Assembly: GCA_965202585.1 (NCBI GenBank)
Contig: OZ241834.1
Location: 39,866,001-39,930,000, forward strand
Length of the DNA: 64,000 bases
From: Thalia democratica
Taxonomy: Eukaryota
Reading direction: 5' to 3'
The notes beneath the pieces are model-generated. The model made no database searches and had not been told where the DNA came from. It was given only the letters and a program-made list of their open reading frames with translations. This document shows positions 1 to 18,200 of the stretch, one piece after another. Both the position numbers and the translations under genes were made by a program. Numbering within the stretch: position 1 is the first letter of the stretch; each line of letters opens with the position of its first letter.

Positions 1-3000
1 TGTCCATCTGGCTCGTCCTCTGCTGCAAGTTGTCCCTGCTCTTAGTTTTGCTGGGCCTTATGCACGGCTTGCTCGGGGCCTGGCTCGTTCTCTGACTGGG
101 TCTGCTTTGCACCTGAGACTGCCTCGTGTCCTGGTTCGGTCCGTTCTGAGACTGGCTTTGTCTGTAGCCCTGTTCTTCGAAGTTGTCAGGGTTCTGACTC
201 GGCCTGGCGTTGTTTTGTGATTGGCTCTGTCTGTACCCTGGTTCACTCGGCCGCGGGTTCTGCTGACTTTGACTCACATTCTGACTCTCCCTGTATCCTT
301 GCTGGTTCTGACTCGGTCTGACGCTTTGCGCTTCACTCTGTCTATTTCCAGAATAATCTTGCCGATAGTAATCATTATTTTGCTGACATTGGTAATCATC
401 TTGATCATACTGATCCTTATCTTGACACTGATTATTGTATTGATTTTGATAATCATCTTGGTACTGATCATTATCCTGACACTGATTATTGTCTTGATTT
501 TGATAACTATCTTGGTACTGATCATTATCCTGACACTGGTAATTGTCCTGATATTGGTCATTGTCCTGGTATTGGTCATTACCTTGGCAATTTTGTTGTT
601 TTTGGTACTGTTGTTGAGACTTACGTAGGTTCTTTTTACCGCCAGATCTTGCATATTCAATACAAGGATCAACTTTCCTCTGTTTCTTTTGATGTCCTTG
701 GCAACGACCATTGTCCTGATGTGGACCATTTTGACTCGGTCTTACATTCTGCTGATGGTTCTGGCTTGGCCTTGCACTTCCTGGTGTTTCACTCTGCCTA
801 CACCCTTGTTGACTTTGCCTCACACTTTGCGCTTGGCTAGGTCTTGTGTTTTGAGGGTTTTGAGTCTGTCTTCCTTGAGGACTTTCGCATGATCTTTCTT
901 GACTCTGACCTCTTGACTGTCCTCTTGACTGAGATCTTCCCTGACTTTGTCCTCTAGACTGAGATCTTCCTTGACTCTGGTTTCCAGAGTTATCTTGCCG
1001 GTAGTAATCATTATCTTGATGACATTGGTCGTCATCTTGATAATACTGGTCATTATCTTGACACTGACCTCTGGATTTAGATCTCCCCTGACTCTGGCCT
1101 CTGGACTGAGATCTTCCTTGTCTTACACTGGAAGGCGATTCACCTTCCCTGTAACCTTGTTCATTTTGATTACCACTTTGCGCTTGGCTGGGTCTTGTGT
1201 TCTGTTGTGGATTTTGACTTTGTCTTACATTCTGACTCTCCCTATATCCTTGCTGGTTCTGACTCTGCCTCACACTTTGTGCTTGACTGGGTCTTGTGTT
1301 TTGAGGGTTTTGACTTTGTCTTCCTTGAGGACTTTCGCTTGGTCTTCCTTGGCTCTGGCCTCTTGACTGAGATCTTCCCTGACTCTGACCTCTTGGTTGA
1401 CCTCTTGACTGAGACCTTCCTTGTCTCTCGTTCTGAGGCGACACACTCTCCCTATATCCTTGCTGGTTCTGACTCTCCCTATACCCTTGTTGGTTCTGAC
1501 TCTCCCTATATCCTTGCTGGTTCTGACTCTCCCTATATCCTTGCTGGTTTTGACTCGGTCTTACACTTTGCGCTTCACTCCGTCTATTTCCAGAGTTATC
1601 TTGCCGGTAGTAATCATTATCTTGATGACATTGGTCGTCATATTGATCATACTGGTCATTATCTTGACATTGATCATTGTCTTGGTAGTGGCCATCATTT
1701 TGATATTGATCATTGTCTTGGTACTGATAATTGTCCTGATGATACTGGCCATTACCTTGATACTCTTGTTGTTCTAGGCAATTTTGTTGATCTTGGTACT
1801 GTTGTTGTTGAGACTTACGTAGGTTCTTTTTACCGCCAGATCTTGCGTGTTCAATACAAGGATCAACTTTCCTCTGTTTCTTTTGATGTCCTTGGCTACG
1901 ACCATTGTCCTGATGTGGACCATTTTGACTCGGTCTTACATTCTGGCTCGGTCTTGCATTCTGCTGATGGTTCTGGCTTGGCCTGGCACTTCCTGGTGTT
2001 TCACTCTGCCTACACCCTTGTTGACTTTGCCTCACACTTTGTGCTTGGCTAGGTCTTGTGTTTTGAGGGTTTTGAGTCTGTCTTCCTTGAGGACTTTCGC
2101 ATGGTCTTCCTTGACTCTGACCTCTGGATTGTCCTCTGGACTGAGATCTTCCTTGTCTCTCATTCTGAGGCGATTCACTCTCCCTATATCCTTGCTGGTT
2201 ATGACTCTCCCTATATCCTTGCTGGTTCTGACTCTCCCTATATCCTTGCTGGTTCTGACTCGGTCTTACACTTTGCGCTTCACTCCGTCTATTTCCACAG
2301 TTATCTTGCCGGTAGTAATCATTATCTTGATGACATTGGTCGTCTTGATCATACTGGTCATTGTCTTGACACTGACCTCTGGATTTAGATCTTCCCTGAC
2401 TCTGGCCTCTGGACTGAGATCTTCCTTGTCTTACACTGGAAGGCGATTCACCTTCCCTGTAACCTTGTTCATTTTGATTACCACTTTGCGCTTGGCTGGG
2501 TCTTGTGTTCTGTTGTGGATTTTGACTTTGTCTTACATTCTGACTCTCCCTATATCCTTGCTGGTGTTGACTTTGCCTCACACTTTGAGCTTGGCTAGGT
2601 CTTACGCTTTGCGCTTCGCTATGTCTAACCCCAGATTGACTTTGCCGATGGTTACCCTCATCTTGGTACTGACTGTTTTGTTGACTTTGGTACTGGTCGT
2701 TACCTTGGCAATGATGTTCAGACTGATTTAGGTTCTGCTTAGACTTACTCTTAGATCTGGCGTATTCTGCACAATGTTTCACTGTGTTCTGTTTTTTTTG
2801 TTGTTTTTGACCTTGACCATTATTACCATTATTTTCTTGATGCTGACCATTTTCTTGATACTGGTTATTTTGACCCTGTTTTGCGTTTTGCGCTTCACAT
2901 TGTCTGTTGCTTTTTATATCTTCAATCTCCCTCATGTTCTTACTCGGTCTGGCATTCTGTTGTTGGTTTTGTCTGGTGTTCTGGCTTGGCCTGGCACTTC

Positions 3001-6000
3001 CTGGATTTTCACTCTGCCTACACCCTTGTTGACTTTGCCTCACACTTTGTGCTTGGCTAGGTCTTGTGTTTTGAGGGTTTTGAGTCTGTCTTCCTTGAGG
3101 ACTTTCGCATGGTCTTCCTTGACTCTGACCTCTTGACTGACCTCTGGACTGAGATCTTCCCTGACTCTGGTTTCCAGAGTTATCTTGCCGGTAGTAATCA
3201 TTATTTTGATGACATTGGTCGTCATCTTGATCATACTGATCATTATCTTGACATTGACCTCTGGATTTGGATCTTCCTTGACTCTGTCCTCTGGACTGAG
3301 ATCTTCCTTCTCTTACATTGGAAGGCGATTCACTTTCCCTGTAACCTTGTTCATTATTACTAACACTTTGCGCTTGACTGGGTCTTGTGTTTTGAGGGTT
3401 TTGACTCTGCCTGACTCCTTCAGGATTTTGACTTTGCCTGACCCCTTCAGGATTTTGACTTTGCCTGACCCCTTCAGGATTTTGACTTTGTCTTCCTTGG
3501 CTCTGTCCTCTTGACTTAGACCTACTTTGGCCTCTGGACTCGCTCCTGTCAACTTTTGTCTTAGACCTACTTTGGCTCTTGTCAACTTTGGACTGACTCT
3601 TTTTCTCTTTGTTGGTCTGGACGTAATGGTCACTGGAACCGGGACTCGATTCAAACTCGTCCCATTGGCTCACATCGTCGTCATGGTTATCGTTTACGTC
3701 GCTTCTTACGTCATCATTGTGCTGTCCATGATCATCATTGTGCTGCTGACTTGTGACGTCATCATTGTGTTGATGTTGTAGGTCTTGATTTGACTTCTTT
3801 CCTTTTGATCTCGCGTACTCTGCACAGTGGTTCGGCTTCTTCTGTCTCTTTTGCTGTTTGTTCTGATGAACACTTGATTCAGCACTTTGTGAACTTTCAA
3901 TGTTTTGTTGTTGATTTTGTTGATCATCATATTGAGGATTGCTTTGGTGCTTTTGACAATTTTTTTGCTGATTTCTTTGTTGATATTGACTATTTTTTTG
4001 CTGATACTGGTTGTTTTCGTGATGTTGACCATTATCTTGATAATGACTGTTACCTTGGTGATATTGGTCATTGTCTTGGAATTGATCAGCATCCTGATAT
4101 TGGTCATTTTCTTGGTAATGTTGTTGTTCTTGGTGTAGGTTTTGGTTAGATTTTCCATTAGACCTGGCATGTTGTGCACAAGGACTTGCTTTCTTCTGTT
4201 TTCTTTGTTGTTGTTGTTGGTATTGATCATCATTATTTTGACTATGACCATATTTATCTTGATATTGACCGTTATTATGATTATTTTGCCTATTATCTTG
4301 GTATTGATCGTTATTTGGCCTAGTTTGTTGACAATTACCGTTATTTTTGTTATGTTTACCATTATTTTGCTGATATTGGTCATTATTTTGTCTATATTGA
4401 CCATTACTTTGATGATATTGACCATTATTTTGTTCATAATTACCATTAGTTTGCCTATTTTGACCATTATTTTGATTACATGGACTATTATCTCGGTATT
4501 GGCCATTACTTTGTCTATTTTGACCGTTACTTTGATGATATTGACCATTATTTTGTTCATAATTACCATTAGTTTGCCTGTTTTGACCATTATTTTGATT
4601 ACATGGACTATTATCTTGGTATTGGCCATTATTTTTCCTGTTTTGACCGTTACTTTGATGATATTGACCATTATTTTGTTCATAATTACCATTAGTTTGC
4701 CTGTTTTGACCATTATTTTGATTACAAGGACTATTTTCATGGTATTGACCATTATTTTGCCTGTTTCGACCGTTACTTTGATGATATTGACCATTATTAT
4801 ACTCATAATTACCATTATTTTGCCTGTTTCGACCATTATTTTCATTACAAGGACTATTATCTTGGTATTGACCATTATTTTGCTGATGTTCTTGGTACTG
4901 CTCGTCACAATGTTGGTTGTCATAGTACTGTTGGTTGTCATGGTACTGTTGGTTGTCATGGTACTGCTGTTGAGACAGATCGTAACCCTGGTTATCGTCA
5001 CAGTTCATCTCATCTTGGTCGTCAAAACTTTCATCATCGAAACACCCCTGTTGCCCCCGGTTACCTGATCTCGACGACCCCTGGCCCTTCTGGTTCCTGC
5101 TCTTTGACCTCGCTCCGTTGTTGGGTTTCCTGCTCTTGCTCCTTGCTGGCGTCTTACCTCTACTCTTGTTCCTCGCTGGCGTCTTTCCTCTTTTAGGAGC
5201 TTTCTTCTTCTTGGACTGGGATCTTCCCCTCTGGACACTGTTGGATGATTTTTGTTGGGACTCATCGTTTTGTATTGTTCTTCGCTGCATGTCGATGAAA
5301 TACCTTTTAAACAAGTTGATTTAAACACCTCATGAGTGTAGCTTTATAAAACTCTGCTGCTCTTTGTTTGGTTGTGCGTTTTTTTTTATACATACTTCAA
5401 TGGTCTGATTTGTGGTCTGATGATCGAACTGGTATGTTCAACTCTTATGTTAAACTTGAGCTTACGGCATACGAAAGTCCAGGCTTCTGCACCGCAGACT
5501 TTCGCCGATGTTTTGTCCATTGATTTATGATCAAACTTTACATAACTTAAAAGTAAGCAGTTGTTGAACAAACAAACAAAAAAAATTTAGCTGTTAAAGT
5601 TTAACAAACTTTTCTGTTTCAAAAAGACAACATTGATGTTGTTGTTGAGTTATAGCACCAAAAAAAGTTATAGATACAAACATTTTAAAGTATAACAAAC
5701 TTATCAGTATTAATAATACAAGATTAATGTTGTTGTAGACTTGTAACAATAAATAAAAGATAAACATTAGTTTTTTATGAAATATAACAAACTTTTCAGT
5801 GTCAATGAGACAAGATTGATATTGTTGCTGAGTAGCTGCTGGAAACCTCATTTGATGTTGGGAATCTTTTGAGTAACATGAAGATTTCATTGGCATCTGA
5901 TTGAATCTTGTCTTTGCATCATTACCATCACTGTATTCTATTGCCATACTGTTGAGAAAATAATAGATATCAATGTAATTTATAACTGTATAAATAGTCA

Positions 6001-9000
6001 CAATACAGACTATACTATATAGTCATATTGCTACAATTGATAGGTATCTTTTTAAATAAGTATATTGAAACAAAATGTAATAGTTCAAAATCGCTGTGTT
6101 CTATTGTCATACATTTATGTTAAGATATTTAAAAAAAAGGTAAAATATAAATATCTAATAAATCACAACCACTATATTCTATTGCCATACTTAGAAAAAA
6201 GATATGATTGAAACAGAAAACAATATAACTTCATTCAATCGGTATTTCCTAATTTAATTCTGTTAAAGTTTATTTCTATTTAGAAACACAAATAAATTAA
6301 AAATCGGAAATAATATTTTATTGTCGTACTGTTAAAGTTTAAAAGTAATAACTTACTATATTTTATTATTTAAAAACTTTGTTAGACAGTCTTAATTTAC
6401 CAAAAATAAATTATTATATAGAACTTGAATTTACAACATTTTTACGGGTCAGAAAGTAGTTAATAGATTTATAAAATGTAATAAGGATTTACTTTTAGAT
6501 GTATCATAGTCATTTTATTTTTTTGTGCTTTATAACTAGTAAAAACTATAAGTTAGTTAGAAGAAAAACTTCAGTTTTAAGGGTGTAGTAAGAAATAATA
6601 ATTAGAAGTTTAGAACTAAACTGTAATTAAGCTATATTAGCATTACATTTATAAATATTACTATAATCAGCTCATAATCATTCGAGTCACTTAAAAAATA
6701 CAAAACAAAACTAAATTTAAGTGTTAGCAAGTTTTTGTAAGTGATGAAAATCATTTGGACAAAACCTAAATGTTGCTAATGTACTAAAGTTTTACATTTT
6801 CATTTTACAAACTTTGTTCTACTTTGATCAAAGTTTCAAAAAGTTGTACTTAAAAAAACAAATCTAAGTCTAGTAACATTAAAATCATAAGTAATACTAG
6901 TCATTTAAACTATTATAAATCAACACAAAAAGATCTTCTATTGGTTAAAAATATCAAAGACAGCATATAACTATGTTATGATAAGAAGACGAAAAAGTTA
7001 TAAAGCTGATGAAATTTTTTAGACATAATTTGTAAATCTCTTAGTTCTAAAGTTGTTAGAACTTAAAAATAGTGGTTGTATTGAAATCAAAAAGTTAGCA
7101 AAAATACGAAACATTATAAGCTATAACTACAAGTAAACATATTTTTTTAACCAACCTGATAACTTTTAACTCAGGTGATAATTTGTTCTGATTCCAGAAG
7201 TTCTGCAAATTTTCATTCTGATCATTGATTGGATGAAACAAGAAGTTTAATTGATCATGCGTGACGAATCTTGCGTATTCTGTCAACACCTCACCCTTAA
7301 CACAATGTCTGTATTCTAAAAAAATATTATTAATTTGAATATATGATTTACTTTTTACATAATTATTATTTACTCTTTACTAAATAACAGTAGACTGATT
7401 GAAGTTTTAACAAAAAGTAGTCTGTTTTATTTTTTTAGAATAATTTATGTATTGAAACTGTTTGTTGAAATAGTAAATAAAATATTGTTCAAATATTACG
7501 ACTTTAAGAATGAAGTTTATTTGTTTGAGTTTTGTCGATACACACTTACCGTCTACCTAATTGATTGTGTTTAAAATATTTTACTTTAGGCAAACTATCA
7601 TACATGAGTAAGCAAATAAATATTACTTTAATAATAAAATTAGATTGAGATGCATTATAAATTCTAAATAAGCAGATAAAAATCGATACAAGTTGTACAT
7701 CTAAACTCATTTGTAAAAAAAAAAAATATTGACTAAAAATATGTTAAAATAGACACCTTAAGGCTTAAATGTTCACATTTTAATAAATTAGAAGTTAATT
7801 AATTAATATTTTACTAAACTTTAAAGCTAAACGTTATGAAAAAGCTACCATAACAGTTATTGAATTTAAACACAAAACAAAAGTTTTTATTATAAGTTTT
7901 TAATTAAATATAGCAGCTTTATCTAAAAAGGTTGTTTATCCGACAACTTAGTTTAGATGTTTAAACGTCTCTATGATTTTACGATAATGCTTCGAAACTA
8001 CTTTTTGGTTTTTAAACTCGTATTGAAAATATTTTCAAGACTAAAAACAGATGCTATAACACCAACGAATTATTGTTTTAAACAAACAACTAACTGTTTC
8101 TTAACACTCCATACTTGGGTGTGAAATCATAACTATCTGGGGCTTCTACTTTGTAAGCGATAAGTGGGCATTGTTCGTTGCATTCACATTCCAACAAGAA
8201 GTTGAATTTCAAACTGTTTTTGTTACCAGGTTGCTTTGTCCATACTAATATGCTTTGGTGTTCGCTGTTTGGAAAAAATTGAGTATGAATTGCAAATATA
8301 TATTTTGATATACAATACTAAAAAATGTTTTTTGTGGATTATAAAATAAGTATATATACGCTTATATGAAAACCATCATTCATAATAGTTTTAAACGTGC
8401 TGACTATTACAAAATTAGCTTAAAAATTTCAATCTAATATTGAATAAATTTATGTGACAATTTTATGTGCTCTATATTAACCTGACAATTAACATAAAGC
8501 ATGCACTTTTATTTAGATGTTAAAGTTTAATAAGCAAAGTTTACATTAAAATTTACTCAAGTAGTGTGTTATAAAAGTAAATAAAATCATAATGATAAAA
8601 TTTTACAGTAATAAAAAAATCTGCATGTACTCAAACTTTTGTAATTGGTAGCAAATCAAATAATCTGGTGTTCACTGTACATAACTGCTCTTTAAATAAG
8701 TTTAGAAATTTTTTAAGTAAAAAACCAGAACAGACAATAATAATAAAATAAAAAGTATAACTTGCTTTTGTAAATTGATGTTAATTGGGTTTTTCAAACA
8801 AATAAATTATGGATATAATAGCATTAAGTTAAGCAAATAATTGAAAAGTATATACAATATTTACTTCAAAAAAGTAAAACATTTTAACTTTAAAAGCTTT
8901 TCTCTGAAATAAGCGTAATTATCTTACAAACAGTGTATTGTACACGAACTATTTTTTCGACTAACAAAGTTTCGCTTTATAAAAATCTAACAAGGAGTTA

Positions 9001-9251
9001 TTTACAAAAAACAATGGTTTTGATTTTTGACGACTTTGCTTGTCTTTTATTTAGAGCTCATAAGTTTATTACTATATTTTGTATATAAGCTTATTTCATA
9101 ACATATTTTGCTATTTTATGTACCAAAACTGTAATTAGCTAAATCTTTAAATCTTATATAAATTTATCAAAAAGTTTAAAGATATTAACTTAGATTTAAC
9201 TAACAAGTAATTGGTAGGACACCAGTCTGAACAACCTTCTTGATTTTCCAT
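1..9251 (-). CDS. Giant low-complexity repeat protein with N-terminal MSP/VAP-like Ig-fold domain; 6 exons, C-terminus beyond window edge (at least 1,995 aa)
   Basis: Minus-strand exons 9251-9205, 8264-8095, 7315-7156, 5948-5793, 5545-5396 and 5303-<1. All introns are GT-AG and all phases match. Translation begins MENQEGCSDWCPTNYFEHQSILVWTKQPGNKNSLKFNFLLECECNEQCPLIAYKVEAPDSYDFTPKYGVLRNKYRHCVKGEVLTEYARFVTHDQLNFLFHPINDQNENLQNFWNQNKLSPELKVISMAIEY. By eye this resembles the MSP pattern (VAP FKVKTT..Y.V.P..G, and the downstream W..). The domain call is inference and was not searched. Confidence 0.8.
2..5303 (-). CDS. Large exon of the repeat-protein gene, stop-free for 1,767 codons and open at the window edge
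   Basis: I read every triplet in this register from 5302 down to 2 and found no TAA/TAG/TGA. Product includes MQRRTIQNDESQQKSSNSVQRGRSQSKKKKAPKRGKTPARNKSRGKTPARSKSRKP..., QNNGQYQDNSPC repeats, SQGRSQSRGQ blocks and DQYDQDDDQC blocks. Confidence 0.92.
600..3500 (-). repeat. Higher-order coding repeats: about 1.0-1.2-kb modules with embedded 27-nt (9-aa) repeats NQQGYRESQ and NPEGVRQSQ
   Basis: A block starting ctgg(t/a)(g/t)tttcactctgcctacaccc occurs at 781, 1993 and 3001 (spacings 1212 and 1008, both multiples of 3). 27-nt units occur at about 1445-1545, 2178-2255 and 3405-3490. Confidence 0.85.
4380..4870 (-). repeat. Coding tandem repeat, 123-nt (41-aa) unit, about 4 copies (QNNGQYQDNSPCNQNNGQNRQTNGNYEQNNGQYHQSNGQNR)
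   Basis: The anchor cataattaccatt recurs at 4435, 4558, 4681 and 4804, exactly 123 nt apart. Confidence 0.9.
5600..5830 (-). repeat. Triplicated 91-92-bp unit containing an exon 3' end plus GTTTGT splice donor
   Basis: Three related copies on the minus strand (caacaa...caatcttgtc...actgaaaa|gtttgtta) with donors at 5792, 5700 and 5609. Confidence 0.75.
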
Positions 9252-10437
9252 TTTATTAAAACAATTTTAAAACACACGAACACAAAACAAACAGAAATTT
9301 GAAATCCAGTATGAAAATTGACAGAAGTTATTCAAGTCTAATTATTACGTTGCTAACATGTTGAAAATAATTTCGTTGTTAAGAAAAGTTTTTAACAATT
9401 TTTTGATATAATTTTTCTAGTTAGCTCTTTCAAAACACATAACTAGTTTTGTTATCATTTTTATACAAGTTTATCAGAAGACTTTATAGTTAGATAACTT
9501 AGTTAGAAATTAATCTACTTATTATATTAAATTTTTAAGTCAATTTCAATACATATTTATTCACTAGAACAGCATTTCTTTGTATGAAGTACGAAAAAAG
9601 TCTTTGTATCGAAATTTGAATATTAATGGAATATTTTAACTATTTTTCACCACAATATCTTTGAGTCGGCAGGCCATTAAAAGTCTTTAGCAGGCTAGAA
9701 TTATTATAAAAGTGTCCTAGGACTTAGCGTAACTTTAAGTAATTCTAGTAAAAAAACTAAGAAACTCTTAAAAAGCAGAATGACAGTAAAATAAATATTC
9801 AATATACACTATCTTGTACTAAGAATAAAGTTTAGACAAATTTTTTACTTATAAAAGTTTAATTAGCAGTTTTGGTTTTGTCAGTATCTTTAGACTATCT
9901 AAATTTAAAGATTTTGTCTATTGTTGATTTTATTTAATTAAACTGATCAGTTAGTTTCGTTTTTTAACATATTTAGTTTCACAATCAGATTTTTCGGCAA
10001 TTATAATTTTTTATTTGTATAACTTTAAATAATCATTAATTGGTTTTTAAATTTTTCTTGTTTTTACCTGAAAAACTATTTTGTTTATAATTGTCTACTG
10101 TTTGTTTTTCAAGATCAATATTAAAAAAGTTTTATAAAACTTTATATCAAACTTTTACAAAAAAAAACTGTAAGAGTTTGACTTTGAAAACATGTTTAAA
10201 AATGGTTTTACAATTAAATGTCTACTGATAAAAACACCATTTTGTGTTGTTCTTACTTTGTTGGAATATCTATTTGTCAAATTATCCCAAGCAAATTGCT
10301 TGTTTAAATCTGCTAATTTACATACCTACCTTTGTAAAGAACCATGTCAATTCTATTCGAAGACCTTACATAAACATCTTAAGTTGCCACACTTCAGGAA
10401 ATTTTTGTAAATTAGAAGGATTCATAAAAGTTTTCAA

Positions 10438-10704
10438 CCGTATCCATAAAATTAGATTCCGGCCAAATCTGAAACTTTTATTTAAAATAGAATCTGACTT
10501 GATCCGGATCTTGATTAAGATTATTATCCTGACGGATCCGGATTATATTTTTAAATTAGGATCCGGTTGGATCCGCATCTAAAAAGGTATTGTGCTCTTT
10601 TATAAAAAGAGTACTGGTAAATAACTTATTCGAATTGCTCCGGCCCGCAAAAGACAAAAATTTTCCGGATCCGGCTCGCTGATTAAAAACGTTGCTCACC
10701 CCAA
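10438..10704. mobile_element. GGATCC-rich non-autonomous DNA transposon remnant (hAT-like end)
   Basis: Several (cc)ggatcc(gg) palindromes in a GC-richer patch, ending in gttgctcacccc (reverse complement GGGGTGAGCAAC, TIR-like). The other end was not found. Confidence 0.45.
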
Positions 10705-12766
10705 GCATTGGTGAACAATTGTAAAAATTATTTTTCGTATAATGTGTGAAACATTTCAAATTTTCTACATCATCATTGTACTACACTACATCATGTCATT
10801 TACTTTTTATCTATAACTTTACAGTTAATTTGCCACTTTCAAGCATTGTAGATAAAGTTGTTTTTTAACGAGATTTAGCTTGAACGAGTCTGTAAAACTA
10901 CAACTTTATTAAATTAGTGCTTATTATTTACATCAATTAATGAAAATAAATCTTGATGTTATTTTTCAAACTATATTAAAATGAATAAAATAAAGTGTTA
11001 AAATACTGTTGAAATATTAAACTATTGGTTTATTTGTTGTAAATAAGTTTATAAAAAAGTTATATTCATATCAAAAAAGAGTTTCACCATGTGCGAAAAG
11101 TTTAACACTAAAACTTTTAATTAAATATATACTTATTTAATAATTGTTTTACAACTATTAAGAATTAAAACAGGTATTTACAACCTTAAAAAAACATATA
11201 GTAAAATACTCTTCCTAACTATGAAAACACATTCAATAGTATTTTTTATAGAAATCATATTAATGTTACGTGCAAGCTAGAAATTTTATAATAGATGGTG
11301 TATAAAAACAAAAAGCAAATTACATTAAAATTGTGGTTCAAAAGTTGATAAATATTTACTAATATAAACATAGAACAATTTGTTTAGAATTCACACTTCA
11401 TTAATAGTTTTTTAAGACATTAAGCTGATATTAAGAAGATATTTTATAACACAATTTAAATCTTTAGATATAGTTTATTGAATGAAAAAAAAATAAGGGG
11501 CTTAAAATACTTGGTACTAGGAACTGGTGCACGAAGAACCTTACGGTTATCGATTCGCACATCACGGGTACCTTTTAATGTCTTGTCCAGGAAATAATTA
11601 GAAATTGTTTAGGAAAACTATGTCTAGACTGCTGTTGATAGGAAAGAAAACAACTTATCTTGTAATAAATCCTACCGAATTTTAAATACAAATGAGCAGT
11701 AGTGCACCTCACGGATACCTTTTAACGTCTTGTCCAGGACAGCTATTCTTTAAGTAGTAAAAGTAACCTAAGGTGCAACGTTTTAAACAAGTTGTAAGTT
11801 GTTCGACATATTTAAGCAAAGAAATAAATAATAACAACTATAGGTGTTTCTGAAAAAAAATGTATAACGGTTTATACAGTTTAAAGGTAGAACTTTTTTT
11901 TAATAAACTGAACAAAATTTATAATATGAGTTTGCTTAAAGAATAAGCTTTAAGTTAGAAAAATTCGTCAACATAAAAATTACGTTTTATATATTACAAT
12001 GCAAGAACAAACTAAAATATTAAAAACTAATATACTTAAGAGGAATTTATTTACGCTTTAATAATAATGCTTTAAAACATCTTGAAAGAATTTAATAAAT
12101 ATTATTTCTCCTCTAGAAACTGAGATCTTTTTATTGTTTTTCGATAAATCAAAACATCTAATACTAATGAGGAGTCAGCTTTTAATTTAGGTCAATAGTT
12201 CATCAAGTTTAAAAACACAGTGTTGTTTGTTCAGTCAGTAGGGCGTTTGAACTTATTCCTGCGGACAGATATCCAAATATTCCCTGCTAGTTTCTTATTT
12301 TATACAAATTAAAATTACTTAACAATTGTGTTCTGATTTTGTTATTGTTTATTGAACGATAAAAAAAGCGCTCAAAAAGTTTGGTGTACAAAGGACCTTG
12401 TATTATGATTCATATACGTGTTTTTGTTTTTAATTATATGGTTATAGTAATCAAACCATAGTAGTTTTTTACTAAAACTTAATTTCAACAAACTACTAGA
12501 CAAACCCACAAAATTTATGTTTAAGACATGTTTAAATTTAACTATAACTATAAAAACTTTTAAATGCAAAATAAAAGTAGAATAAACTAAGACGAATGGA
12601 AAAAAACTAATTCTATTTTTGTAGCATATTTAGAACTTGTAATAGATTCTAACTAAATTTGAATTGAACTAAAACTGGTAATTTTGAAGTTTCACCTATA
12701 TGTCACAATGCGTTTGGTTTGAGTACACTGAAATAATTTTTTACTACTTGTTACATCGTTAAACAT

Positions 12767-12925
12767 TTCCATAGTGCAATGGATGGCGCGTTGGCCCTCT
12801 ACTTAATGGCATCCGGCTCGAATCCTCGTGGAGCTTTGTTTAATAGCTCGGTCGTAAGGTTTACGGCCCTGAATTGAGGTTCTGCTTTCTTTGAAGTCGT
12901 GTGGGTTCAAAACCACCTACTGCTA
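12767..12925 (+). mobile_element. tRNA-derived SINE-like element or tRNA pseudogene pair (first unit tRNA-Arg(TCT)-like)
   Basis: 12767-12833 follows a tRNA layout: ttccatagtgcaatggatggcgcgttgg, TCT anticodon position, ggctcgaatcc B-box at 12815-12825, gtggag. A second A-box-like tagctcggtcg lies at 12844-12854 and a B-box-like ggttcaaaacc at 12904-12914. Stems are degenerate, so this is not a functional tRNA. Confidence 0.6.
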
Positions 12926-15255
12926 TTTTCATATTACATGTTTTTATTTTAAAATAATAAATGATATCTAATTTTTATTTTGTTTTTTGGATGCTTCTTA
13001 AGGTTTTTAAAACTTCGTATCACTAAAAACAACTTAGTCGTTATTTTGAAAAGATTTTTTTTAATTTTTTAGTTTACTACTAATCTTTATTTATGATATA
13101 ACGTTGTTATCTAGTTTTTAAACTGTGAGCTACACATTTGTTTTAACTTGAAAATTACTGCTAAAAGGAATTAGTTTTTTTTTATCACAAAAGTGTTAAA
13201 AACCTTAGTAAATTTTTGACATTTCAACAAACTATTTAGCAGAAAAAACAAATTTAAAAACAATGCACCAGTGAAGATAGAGATATAATAATGGTGGTAA
13301 AGCCTTTTATAATCAAAATCTTAACTTTATAAACATTTGTTTGGGTTGCTAAGTAACAGTAGTACAATTTGTGCCTGAATAATCAGTATTTTACATTGAA
13401 TGTTGAACTATAATTTTAAAACTGAGTTGATTTTGTAATTGTTTTATTAATTAATTATTTAAAGGTTTATATATTTTTAGATTTGTAAGTACAGGAATTA
13501 AACAAACACTATTTAAAATAAGTTTCAAATACGTACTTAGACTAATTTAATGGGTTTTTTTAAGTTTTCTCATTTAAAGTATAATGTATCCACTAGTGGT
13601 CCTACTCTTCCCTTGGTTTTGTTGTTTAGATAAAGCAACAAGTTTTTAAACCACAAGATTGATATAATCCTATGCATTTTGTTATTATTAATATTAGCTT
13701 ATATTTTTCACTTTTTAACTTATAAAACTTAACATTTTATGAATATAAAACCTCTTATGTAAGTATTATAGCTTAAATTGGTAAAAATAAATGTTTTTTA
13801 GTTTGATGGCACACTAGGTCCATTAAACATAATTGTGGGTATTAATTTTATTACTTATGTTTATCAAAACAAATTGTTTGTGATCAATAAACTATGTTAG
13901 TAAAATATCATAAAGTGTAAAGCTGTATAAGGGGATCATAGACTTCTTATCACAGTGTAGTAAGAGTAAGTTTTACTTTACTTTGTATATGTGTTAGCCA
14001 TGGGCCTTGATCTTACAACATTCAACTCAGAGAGTTTTCAAAGCTGTTGTTAGGACCAATACACCATCATCCCACACTTATTGGGAGTGTTGTTATGTCA
14101 TAAATACTGAAAAGATTGACTTAAAGTTTAGTAAATGTTAAATACTGGTTTTTTTATACTAGGCATACAAATTTACATCAGTATAGGTGCAGTAACTTGC
14201 CATAAGGTTTTTTTTTAAGATACTTTTTGGTTAATTTAAAAATGAATATTAATGGTACTAGTAAAGTTATACATGATGTAACACACTTGCTTTTTCCTAA
14301 AAAACAATATTTTTGTAAAAAGTAGAGTTAGACTGGTGTTTTTGTCCATTAAAATATACTTCAATATATAACATATATAATATTAAAAATTAACTGAGAC
14401 TTAGCTTTTTTTTGTTTGTTTATTCTTATAAAAGGTTTAGTCAAAACTCTTAAACTATTTTTTATTAACTTATAAATTATTATTGTATTTATTAATAAAG
14501 TATTACCTTTTAATACTATAATATATACTGCACTGATATTGTTTTTAGAATTACTAGTATTGAAAAATTTCTACAGTTTTTTACTAATTTTCTAATTAGT
14601 TCTAATACTATTACTGCAACTATTGTTTTCTATTAAGTAAGATAATGTGCTTTAGTCATGTTAGCTAATAATTAAAAAAAGTATAATTAACATGAATAAG
14701 TAAAATTAGATCAAAGTTATTTTTAATCATTAAATGTTTGAATGGAAATGTAAAAAAAAGATGATAAACTGTTTTTATTTATTTTCAGTTTTAAAAAATT
14801 TTTCTTTAGATTTTGTAGTTATAGTAAACTTTTTGTCTATTATAATGATTAATTAGATATAACTTTTTAACTTTTAACCTGAATAGTAAGTTTATAAAAA
14901 AACAGGACTCAAAACAACTTTAAGTATAAAACTTATAAAAGTTTATAATGATTTTGTAAAAAGCTACATTTTGTAAGTAAGCTTGTCTAAAAGTTTTTTA
15001 TATAAAAATAAAGGATTTGTATTCATAATTGGTTGAACGCTTTTGTGCTTTTAATATATATAATTTTTTAATTTTAATATAATATATTAAAAAAAATAAT
15101 TGTTAGAATCTTTCATTTAAACAAGTAATATTTAACACATTTGTTTAAAATCAACTATTTATAAAACTTTGTTTATTATTACCACAATAAACTATTAAAC
15201 AAGTAATACTAAATATAACAAAATCATTAACAGTAATTTTAATAAGTTGCGTTGC

Positions 15256-18200
15256 ATGGCTGATGATTTGAGGAGTATATACAATTTGTGCAATCCAGAT
15301 TCCAATGATTGCATATTGACCTCTGTACTAGTTGAAAAGCTCCAGCAACAATTTGATCCAGATCACTTGTTGAAAATTCAGCAAACTATTGACCCAAGCA
15401 AGAAGGGACAAATAAATTACCAGGACTTCTGTGAGGCAATCACAAATCTTTCTTACCAAGAACAAAGGTTTGAAAAAATATAGTAAATAAAAAATGATTA
15501 CTTGTTTGTTTATGACACATTTAAATCATTTATAATAATCTTGTTTATTTTTGTGAATTTTTATGTTAATAAAGTTCTTATATTTAAATTTTTTACATTA
15601 TTGATAATATTTTTTAGTGACAACAAATCAATTTCCGATCAAGAGTATTCATACAACGAGTATGATGTCATAGAGGGTTCATCAGGAGAAGGATCCAAGG
15701 AAGACATGGAAAATTACCAGGCTTTAGGGGAGTCCCTGAACGCATTGTCCCCAATCAGGAACAGTTTAGGGGATTCACCTGATTATCAGCAACCCAATTC
15801 GAATGGCTTTCAAAGAAGAAACAACTCCATGAGAAAGTTTGTTGTTAGCATTGAAATTTTGTGTTGGATAATGACTATGGTATCTTAATAATTATTTAGA
15901 CTTTGGATTGTCACACACTGCAGCCTAGTCATAAACTCTGGCTAGTTAAAACGTAACTTAAAACAGTTTTCTAAGGCTGTATTTTTGCTTCAGAGAGTTG
16001 CAACCCTGTAGACTTTTTCAGGTAATAAATATAAGTTCACAATTTCCACACATTTAGACTAACTTTAAAAAAACTAAAGCCAACCCAGGCTAGTTTGAAT
16101 TTATTTTTTAGGTTATCTGATAAACTCTGGCTAGTTTTGATTTATTCCCTAAATCTAAAGCTAGTAGTTTTTATATCTTAAAAATTAACTTTTAATTATT
16201 AAAACCTTGTATCATTTTAAACTAGTAAAATTTTTCTTCTTTTTGTAATTTTTTTAAAGAGTTAATACTTTTCTAGTAGGTTGTTGATCTTACTATTTTT
16301 ATTTTTTGAACTCAGGCTAACTCAAGTTAGTTTTTGGTCATTTAGGTTTTTTTTTGCTTTAAAGATTAGCAAACCTGAGAGCTTTAATAAAGCTTGATGG
16401 ATTGATTATTGAATTTCTTTATAAGTGTTTTAATTGTTCTGTTTTTATATACAAATTTTGTTAAAATGTCTGTAAATAACTAGTTTGTTTATTTTTGATT
16501 ACTTAGGGGGTTTTATATAAAACACTTTTAAATAATCACTTTGTCTACCAGGTAGTGATTAGTTTAAAAAAAAAAGTTTTTTTACAAACATATATGTTAG
16601 TAAAGTTATGAAACTCTACACAACATTTATTGTTTTTTTTTTCAAAAGTTTATTTGGCAAGCTTAGTTTTGCTAAAGAGCCATTAGATCTTAAATAAAAA
16701 ATCTTATTAAGTTATAATTTTTTATTTCAAAGCAATCAGAAGCTCTTTGAGCAAAACTTTATTTGCCAAATAAATTTTTGAAAAAAAAGTTTTCTTTTCT
16801 AAAGTAGAGACCTTTACTTGTCTTTTCAACAACTAAACCTATAGTATATATTTTGTAAAAATAAAATTATTGACTAAAAAAAATCAAATCATATCTTTAT
16901 CAAATTAAAACAATCTTTTTGGTGTGCTCAATATTTATAGCATAACTACTTATAAACTTATTTAGTAGCTACTTTTCATCAAAATATTATCTACTCAACA
17001 AATATTTTACATAATTACAAGTTTTAAAGTTTAGTATTAAAAATAAACAACTTTAAATGTGGTCTAATTTCTTTATGTGTACAAGTATATTTATTTCATT
17101 ATTATAGTATCTGTTTGTTAAGTGTAAACAGTATGAAAAATTTTTATAAACAATATAGTGTATATTTTTCTTCCTAGATATGAATAATTAGTTATATGTT
17201 ATATTTTTTAGTCAAATGTTTAAACTTCTTTATATATAATATTATTAAAAATAATGGCACTTATCAGATTTTACTCTCTTATTATAATTGAATATTTATA
17301 ATGTAAATATTTTTCTGGATTAAAAAATTATTTACAATAGATATACACGGAGGTCTTACAATATAAGAAGGTGAGTTTAAAAACATTTAATTAAATATTT
17401 CACACTGTGTGCAGAATGTACTGTTTTTATTGGTGGTTTTACAAACTAATAAATACTTTTGGACTGAAGTTAATGTATGCTGCTTTTTTTGTAAAAATAC
17501 AATATCTCTACAAGGCTGGTATGTTAATTATTAATGGTGACTTCTACAAAAAATATTTAGTAAAAATAAATAAAGTTTGTAAAAACTGTAATTCTTGAAT
17601 AATTTATATATCGATGTTATTTAAGTAGTACATGTATTTCTAACTTCACTTAGTTTGTTTTATATTATTCACATTTTAATTTTACACTATTTGCAGTTAT
17701 TATTAATAAATAGGGTATTTATAACTTTTTAAAGGATGGTTTATTAATTAACTACTTTTATTTGGTGACTTTAAAACTTTCTCTACTTTAATTACCACTA
17801 TTAATTACTAGTAAAAACAGCAAATAACTTTTACAGGAACTGAATATTAAGTTATCTAATTAATTTTTGTAGCTTGTCTATAAAAATTCATTTGGCTATT
17901 TATTTTACATTCTGTTCACATTTAGAAGTATGCTGTTGTTAGAACCACAAAATGTGTTTGAATAAAATTATTTTACACAGTAATTTGATATTAATTACTG
18001 TTATACTTATGAACTTAAATAATTACATAGACCTTTAAGAATTTTCACTTACTTTTTCTTATGCACATTTCTTTATTACATTTTTGAGCATGTTTTTATG
18101 TTTGTTTATTTACTGCTGCATAAAAACTTTCTAAAAGATGTTTTTATCAACTTTTTGATTTATCATCTTTGATTGTTAATTTTTCTATCCGTTGTAATTA

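Follow-up and report, generated by a model that had tools for sequence, protein, structure and literature searches.

A probable salp gene family joining a divergent MSP-type head to giant disordered tails

The MSP domain is the immunoglobulin (Ig)-like sandwich of the VAP, MOSPD and nematode sperm proteins, and in nematodes it forms the sperm cytoskeleton. A 64,000-base stretch of the genome of the salp Thalia democratica (contig C10, positions 39866001-39930000 of an 802-Mb assembly), referred to here as the window, carries on its minus strand, from position 9251 through position 1 and into the adjoining DNA (locus L013, given in negative coordinates), what is best read as one of four paralogous genes, in which a divergent MSP-type head is followed by a giant disordered tail maintained by selection. 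We give this reading a probability of roughly 0.7, and the gene very probably represents, as judged from sequence comparisons, a variant of an already known domain family that is specific to its lineage. An earlier description made from the letters of the window alone (the sequence-only reading) had proposed an MSP/VAP-like head followed by a disordered repeat tail, and both parts are borne out by the analysis, the head by the significance of a profile-profile comparison and the tail by its approximately 1,840 Q/N/S/R-rich residues. The size then proposed, at least 1,995 residues, was about right (the model has 1,945 codons inside the window, and 2,020 residues when the giant exon is read as far as its own stop), although the list of exons behind it was not exact.

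The giant open frame and its tail

Window positions 2-5320 contain, on the minus strand, 1,773 codons without a stop, where about 102 stops are expected from base composition; the longest open frame among 200 shuffles was 192 codons, and the other five frames of the region have from 21 to 226 stops. In the adjoining DNA the frame reaches a stop at -226..-224, which is 224 bases past the window edge and brings the total to 1,848 codons. The sequence-only reading had rightly remarked that this frame is missing from the list of open reading frames (ORFs), and the reason is that the ORF tool does not list a frame still open at the end of the source sequence. The first 5.3 kb of the window has a G+C content of 42-48%, compared with approximately 23% in non-coding DNA, and shows a strong excess of A over T on the minus strand.

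The repeats of the region respect this one frame. Tandem Repeats Finder gave periods divisible by three in 22 of 22 rows (18, 21, 27, 30, 33, 36, 42, 54, and 123), and in a self-comparison every offset between large internal duplications of the tail was a multiple of three. Between duplicated tail segments the ratio of non-synonymous to synonymous substitution rates (dN/dS) is 0.13-0.38 in the giant frame only, the same duplicates giving 0.95-3.9 when the strand is read in its other two frames, and mismatches between them are distributed 27/23/71 over codon positions 1, 2, and 3. In DNA contigs from three public runs, 10 of the 11 listed allelic or individual variants in exons 2-5 are synonymous third-position changes, including each of the four listed for the giant exon. 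Within window positions 5076-5319, the reference and a contig of run X3 differ by a length of 30 bases, which is in frame. Judging from the missing stops, the multiple-of-three repeats and offsets, the dN/dS values and the synonymous variants, the giant frame is translated sequence under purifying selection and not an accidentally open minisatellite.

The frame corresponds to exon 5 of the gene model, which extends on the minus strand from 5303 to 1 and on to about -206, behind an acceptor ttaaaag/G at 5305-5304 (a slash marks the splice junction). The tail that it encodes, approximately 1,840 residues long, consists of Q (22.7%), N (12.2%), S (11.9%), R (8.9%), G (7.5%), D (6.4%), and Y (5.0%) among others, with I, L, V, F, M, and W together making up just 3.7%; its net charge is +40, and it contains 43 cysteines, several of them within recurring repeat motifs. 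By its sequence, such a tail is strongly hydrophilic, repeat-built and disordered, and cannot fold by itself. Near its start the translation has a basic K/R/S-rich stretch (‘KKKKAPKRGK...’) and then an acidic D/E patch (5042..5224, minus strand), the net charge over model residues 201-300 being +11, and the basic stretch may act as a nuclear-import signal. A 30-base tandem repeat at 5133-5191 lies inside the stretch in which run X3 differs, which would amount to in-frame variation in repeat number between individuals. Further along the minus strand are a 123-base (41-residue) N/G/Q/Y-rich array at 4374..4883, of 4.1 copies that are 93% alike (Tandem Repeats Finder), and, from motif search and self-comparison, five basic ‘hinge’ modules, ‘(Q)KKQ(R)K..C.(E/Q)(Y/H)ARS.GK’, between 620 and 4220. 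All five copies conserve ‘C.(E/Q)(Y/H)ARS’, the Cys codons starting at window positions 4180, 3826, 2773, 1858, and 664, and the modules open super-repeats built from D/Q/N/Y blocks, ‘RSQSRGQSQGR’ blocks and ‘QNPQNTRPSQAQSVRQSQ’ blocks. Pfam assigned no family to the whole giant exon, a word-index protein search with the giant ORF returned no homolog, and the two protein libraries searched contained nothing of the giant exon, of the window head or of the head of the paralog on contig C8 (see below).

The head exons, their paralogs and the MSP-type domain

Upstream of the giant frame, G+C islands coincide with open minus-strand pieces, and these can be joined as four exons that are in phase and have canonical GT-AG sites. 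Exon 1 (9251-9205) contains the ATG and the first 15 residues, with ‘WCP..Y’ at the end and a phase-2 donor TT/GTTAGT; an in-frame stop lies five codons 5′ of the ATG and there is no AG in between. Exon 2 (8264-8095; acceptor ...aaacag/C, phase-1 donor A/GTTAGT) encodes the first half of the MSP-like domain and includes ‘LIAYKVEAPDSYDFTPKYGVL’, exon 3 (7315-7156; acceptor tttttttag/AA, phase-2 donor AG/GTTGGT) encodes the second half, ‘...CVKGEVL...LNFLFHPI...NLQNFWNQNK...KVI’, and exon 4 (5948-5793; acceptor ctcaacag/T, phase-2 donor AA/GTTTGT) encodes the domain's last strand, followed by a short linker that is conserved, ‘(V/I)(P)VE(F/Y)SD..AK.RF..MP.KS ... C.IDT.K’. All four are on the minus strand, and the head reads ‘...AYKVEAPDSY...’. 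The in-phase splicing into the giant frame claimed by the sequence-only reading thus stands, but not its number of five upstream exons: an extra exon between exons 2 and 3 was rejected and a fifth upstream exon is not supported, because all four family members splice these two exons together in phase with nothing in between, and because L002, an uninterrupted MSP reading frame of the same genome (see below), aligns over the place where they meet.

Genome searches that used exons 2 and 3 as queries brought up the other three members, paralogs on contigs C8, C7, and C6 whose exons follow the same order (exon-2 matches, E 2e-6 to 0.05). The codon positions and phases of the introns of exons 1-4 are identical in the four genes, the short, ATG-bearing first exon recurs in C8, C7, and C6 with its phase-2 donor and a W(C/H)P..(Y/F) motif, and all four spliced heads are open. 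Six of the seven variants listed in exons 2-4 of the window gene are synonymous (two of two in exon 2, two of two in exon 3 and two of three in exon 4), the remaining one being an S>L change in exon 4. When the exon-2 profile was run with HMMER against 1.84 billion proteins, it matched two spurious bacterial repeat proteins and two salp ORF fragments from ocean metagenomes, the latter related to the paralogs on C7 and C6. A 4-kb ocean-metagenome contig that is approximately 89-92% identical to the C7 gene keeps all of its splice sites and gives a dN/dS of 0.40; it carries indels in the introns, exons 1-3 and the first 150 bases of exon 4 being free of them. As judged from this conservation of sequence and structure, the head family is a real, conserved, multi-exon gene family, and it has been seen in salp DNA only.

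Five ENA ocean-metagenome contigs (L031-L034 and L030) are salp nuclear DNA, 89-92% identical to C7 and approximately 79% to C6, and can therefore stand in for a second species or population when selection is tested. At C7:15016211-15016323, in the tail of C7 exon 4, 113 bases are absent from the metagenome ortholog. This is not a multiple of three; either exon 4 would end before its open frame does or the C7 tail would be decaying. The JGI metagenome contigs gave nothing usable with the tail start and exon 2 as queries, a match of 14 residues (L035) being disregarded.

The relationship of the head to MSP domains rests on profile comparisons. A profile of the four spliced heads was searched against 644 reading frames, and its top three matches outside the family were the genome's three frames, among these 644, that pass Pfam PF00635 (gathering cut-off 25.9 bits), namely L002 (E = 6.5e-6), L003 (0.0067), and the salp VAP L001 (0.029), with the next frame at approximately 1. 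L002 (C5:34260577-34263792) is a contiguous MSP reading frame scoring 39.8 bits against PF00635, with ‘DRFLIL’ and ‘AFWRKK’ motifs, and aligns to the head over 70 profile positions across the junction of exons 2 and 3; a word-index protein search with it returned one salp fragment. With hhalign the head matched VAP domains alone at P = 1.1e-3 over 75 columns and a profile of VAPs, L002, and L003 with a probability of 78% (P = 1.7e-5, score 36.8, 74 columns), which is approximately 11 standard deviations above 150 column shuffles (12.0 ± 2.3, maximum 19.0), the reversed alignment scoring 14.4. The head, of approximately 125 residues, is quite probably a divergent MSP-type domain.

In the VAPs, MSP domains serve as receptors for the FFAT (two phenylalanines in an acidic tract) motif, and K94 and M96 of VAP-A are essential for this binding, the counterpart pair in MOSPD2 being R404/L406 (PMC6030701). 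In hhalign and HMMER alignments, which are of distant sequences, the VAP ‘KVKTTAP’ becomes ‘KVE-AP’ in the window head, so that the replacement of the FFAT-binding KTT noticed earlier is upheld, and in an alignment likewise of distant sequences the K94 and M96 positions are occupied by Q and N. The paralogs have K/N, T/V, and K/K at these two positions. Since both the KTT and the K94/M96 positions are replaced, canonical FFAT binding by the head appears unlikely.

Joining of head and tail, and the alternatives

The acceptor at 5305-5304 fits the phase of the exon-4 donor and is followed by TAT TTC ATC GAC (‘YFID’), these codons preceding the first ATG of the giant exon, which lies four codons past the acceptor at 5290-5288. 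In C8 the exon-4 donor (AA/GTTTGA) is at the same codon as in the window (AA/GTTTGT), and the similarity between the two genes and the raised G+C both end there, which is why exon 4 would not be a last exon. The next C8 exon begins, in phase, with ag/A TAT TTC GAC (‘YFD’), homologous to the ‘YFID’ of the window; this bridging exon of 202 bases (67 codons) contains no ATG, is tail-like and T/S-rich, and joins in phase on either side. It is followed by a T/S/R/N/D/Y-rich giant exon (6,494 bases, 2,164 residues), whose coding-like sequence begins 17 codons before its first ATG (ACCATGG context) and which ends in a consensus donor AA/GTAAGT, and by a K-rich last exon, in phase, that ends in a non-repetitive, hydrophilic, basic C-terminus. 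The complete seven-exon C8 model (C8:2995757-3007430; L028, L022, and L023) encodes 2,864 residues and is open with canonical sites throughout; Pfam found nothing meaningful in its tail and C-terminus, and its C-terminal 81 residues have no copy near the window or elsewhere in the genome. In C7 and C6 a hydrophilic tail continues directly within exon 4.

At the other end, a donor CAG/GTATAA at -206/-207 lies six codons before the stop of the giant exon, and candidate downstream exons with canonical in-phase sites are found on the minus strand at -540..-705, -1129..-1303, -1891..-2563, and -2955..-3147. They are hydrophilic and K/E/S-rich, gave nothing meaningful with Pfam, are weakly but collinearly similar to the K-rich exon of C8, and extend the model to at least 2,416 residues without a stop. 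The gene thus probably continues past the giant exon through at least four exons to at least 2,416 residues. The models of 2,020 and 2,416 residues contain no hydrophobic segment (the maximum 19-residue Kyte-Doolittle mean is 0.43, inside the head), and for that reason no VAP-like membrane anchor is seen; signal peptide and membrane segment are absent from the gene model, whose true 3′ end may lie further on. The C-terminus itself is probably not encoded by the giant exon. The hydrophobic sequence obtained by reading on past exon 4 (5792-5597) was rejected as a VAP-like tail anchor, since it resembles an intron in its G+C, has no conserved counterpart in C8, C7, and C6, and lies beyond the conserved donor.

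Several observations weigh against a single gene with an MSP-type head and have to be set beside the evidence above. For the join, the alternative is a conserved row of separate genes, a short MSP-like protein (exons 1-4) and an independent giant low-complexity gene, the latter starting at the ATG at 5290-5288, perhaps downstream in a trans-spliced operon, and the former ending after read-through or another small exon. Tunicates use spliced-leader trans-splicing and operons, an in-frame ATG is available 13 bases past the acceptor at 5304, and the ACCATGG of the C8 giant exon lies 17 codons past its acceptor. Three public runs contain the locus, all as DNA contigs, as is clear from their covering introns and exons alike, and they give no RNA support for the fusion; apparent ‘joints’ in these contigs were rejected as evidence of RNA splicing, being repeat artefacts with sides of 20-30 bases. 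Transcript-derived proteins of the family are likewise lacking in the protein libraries searched. In addition, no sequence similarity is detectable between the tails of the window and C8 genes, with the heads and the downstream K-rich parts being related, and this shared order could also be explained by a duplicated multi-gene block. What speaks against separate genes is the exon-4 donor conserved between paralogs, at which similarity and G+C stop exactly, since an unspliced exon 4 would give the two paralogs unrelated hydrophobic ends from AT-rich or simple-repeat sequence. The ‘YF(I)D’ codons behind the acceptor, common to the window and C8 and upstream of the window ATG, point the same way, as do the C8 bridging exon, which is free of ATG yet open and in phase at both ends, the tails lying inside exon 4 in C7 and C6, and the short distance from exon 4 to the giant exon, only 489 bases (5304..5792) that are in part a repeat insertion. 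Separate genes are thus unlikely in our view, and we hold with good confidence that, on the sequence comparisons, head and tail belong to a single gene with one transcript.

The head might also be an Ig-like beta sandwich that has come to resemble MSP by convergence, through a pattern such as ‘(F/Y)K.E.P..Y...P..G’, and lies outside the MSP superfamily. No single head exon matched any Pfam family at E up to 10, in tests that covered single exons (half-domains) only, and the six-frame genome-wide scan with PF00635 had no match in the window; PDB sequence searches, run with exons 2 and 3 as well as with the exon-2 profile, gave chance-level matches or none. A language-model atlas search returned low-scoring fn3 and RIMBP2 Ig-like clusters and no MSP for exon 2 and nothing for exon 3, and the hhalign probability is 78% and not above 95%. 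AlphaFold2 predicted exon 2 alone as all-beta with four strands, which we presume to correspond to VAP strands a, c, d1, and d2, at low confidence (predicted local distance difference test score, pLDDT, 54). Convergence would nonetheless have to account for 74 matching columns that run in the right order from the ‘FK’ strand to the ‘FW’ motif across an exon junction, for the three PF00635-passing frames of the genome being the top three non-family matches, for a score far above that of shuffled columns, and for the weak direct match of the C6 paralog to PF00635 (17.1 bits, below the cut-off), and it seems improbable. An expanded non-coding minisatellite, untranslated and free of stops by chance, is a very improbable account of the giant frame. 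The sequence is indeed highly repetitive, other frames on both strands are also open for up to 432 codons, and no homolog or Pfam family was found, but the repeats, though of many different families, all keep to a single frame, and only in this frame are most substitutions between duplicates and alleles synonymous. Individuals differ in length by 30 bases, an in-frame change, and the G+C of approximately 45% against 23% in the surroundings is that of the other exons.

Intron 4 (5304..5792, minus strand) contains an approximately 110-base high-copy element (5405-5520) and a partial copy of exon 4 (5606-5656). Compared with the flanks, positions 5308-5615 are covered by reads at roughly 1,000 times the depth, and the element has 1,904 first-look candidates genome-wide, 40 scored copies being 86-91% identical and some arranged head to head. 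It includes a tRNA B-box-like ‘GTTCGATC’ and is recognized by neither ARAGORN nor Rfam, the tRNA and Rfam scans of window positions 1-12000 giving nothing. At 5318 and 5382 individuals differ by indels of a single base, as would suit non-coding DNA. The copy at 5606-5656, approximately 50 bases of the exon-4 3′ end with its donor (‘...CCLFETEKF/gttaaa’ compared with ‘...SCLIDTEKF/gttata’), sits 140 bases downstream in the intron with no acceptor ahead, and is possibly a pseudo-exon or an alternative donor. G+C islands at 9639-14122 (for example 12701-12954) were rejected as exons, having no usable frames and a repeat- or tRNA-derived look; one of them translates to ‘GGFEPTR’, typical of tRNA-derived sequence, and they are probably SINE (short interspersed element)-like repeats. 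On the plus strand at 15199-15885 are two open pieces of a different gene, one with an EF-hand-like ‘DPSKKGQINYQDFCEAI’.

Comparison with known systems and possible role

MSP domains are known from the FFAT-motif receptors VAP-A/B and MOSPD1-3, which are anchored in the endoplasmic reticulum (PMC8306308, PMC6030701). As in VAP-A and VAP-B, the MSP-type domain of the salp protein begins within approximately 15 residues of the N-terminus with no signal peptide, and the aligned core extends from ‘(F/Y)K(V)..AP..Y...P..G(V/I)(I/L)’ to ‘(F/V/M)W’ near the end of the domain. Unlike them, the salp model has no membrane anchor, a tail of more than 1,800 disordered residues in place of approximately 100, ‘KVE’ for ‘KVKTT’ and Q and N at the K94/M96 positions, and its single exons remain below the Pfam threshold. 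The nearest detectable relative of the head is the salp protein L002 on contig C5, with which it has the motifs ‘IAYK’, ‘D(K/R)(I/F)’, and ‘L..FW..K’ in common; L002 keeps ‘KTNAP’ and Arg/Leu at the FFAT-critical positions, whereas the window protein has neither. To judge from its ‘DRFLI’ and ‘FW’ motifs, L002 may be of the MOSPD2 type. MOSPD2 carries a CRAL-TRIO domain and a membrane anchor (PMC6030701). The modelled parts of the salp family differ in having neither of these.

Two further systems are instructive for the absence of an anchor and for the layout of the gene. The nematode MSPs, of approximately 127 residues, are cytosolic proteins without an anchor or an FFAT role, the bare domain polymerizing into filaments; they share the domain superfamily with the salp protein, in which the domain makes up less than 7% of the length. 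In mammalian epidermis, the S100 fused-type proteins (filaggrin, hornerin, and trichohyalin) combine a folded head, encoded by small exons, with a giant, fast-evolving, S/G/Q/R-rich repeat exon, and here the likeness is in the layout, a giant in-frame tandem-repeat exon that differs completely between paralogs. This is an analogy only, as the salp head is MSP-like and has no EF-hand pair (no Pfam match), there is no homology, and the lineages are different.

Because it has lost the residues with which VAP grips the FFAT motif, the head would probably dock to another partner or to itself. In the tail, RS/RG-like basic blocks alternate with acidic D/Q/Y blocks and with Q/N-rich ones, and cysteines are conserved; in the cytoplasm or nucleus it would probably serve as a multivalent spacer or as a matrix that forms a condensate or gel. 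The most likely role would be that of a soluble scaffold, spacer or condensate or gel former. The sequence-only reading had thought of sperm, and nothing in the evidence points to sperm in particular. A more far-reaching proposal, which we consider doubtful at present, is that the family combines a non-FFAT MSP-type head with interchangeable giant tails (Q/N/S/R in the window gene and T/S/R/N on C8) as an independent filaggrin-like invention, building a gel or condensate in the cytoplasm or nucleus of a specialized salp tissue with the head docking or polymerizing.

For annotation the locus is a warning, as ORF-based calling overlooked the whole gene. If the reading proposed here is true, a soluble MSP-like head without the FFAT residues, attached to approximately 2,000 or more disordered residues that purifying selection maintains, would extend the uses to which the MSP fold is put. 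The same head on unrelated giant tails would make the paralogs a natural experiment, and they could show what giant tails conserve, which may be composition, charge pattern and cysteines rather than sequence.

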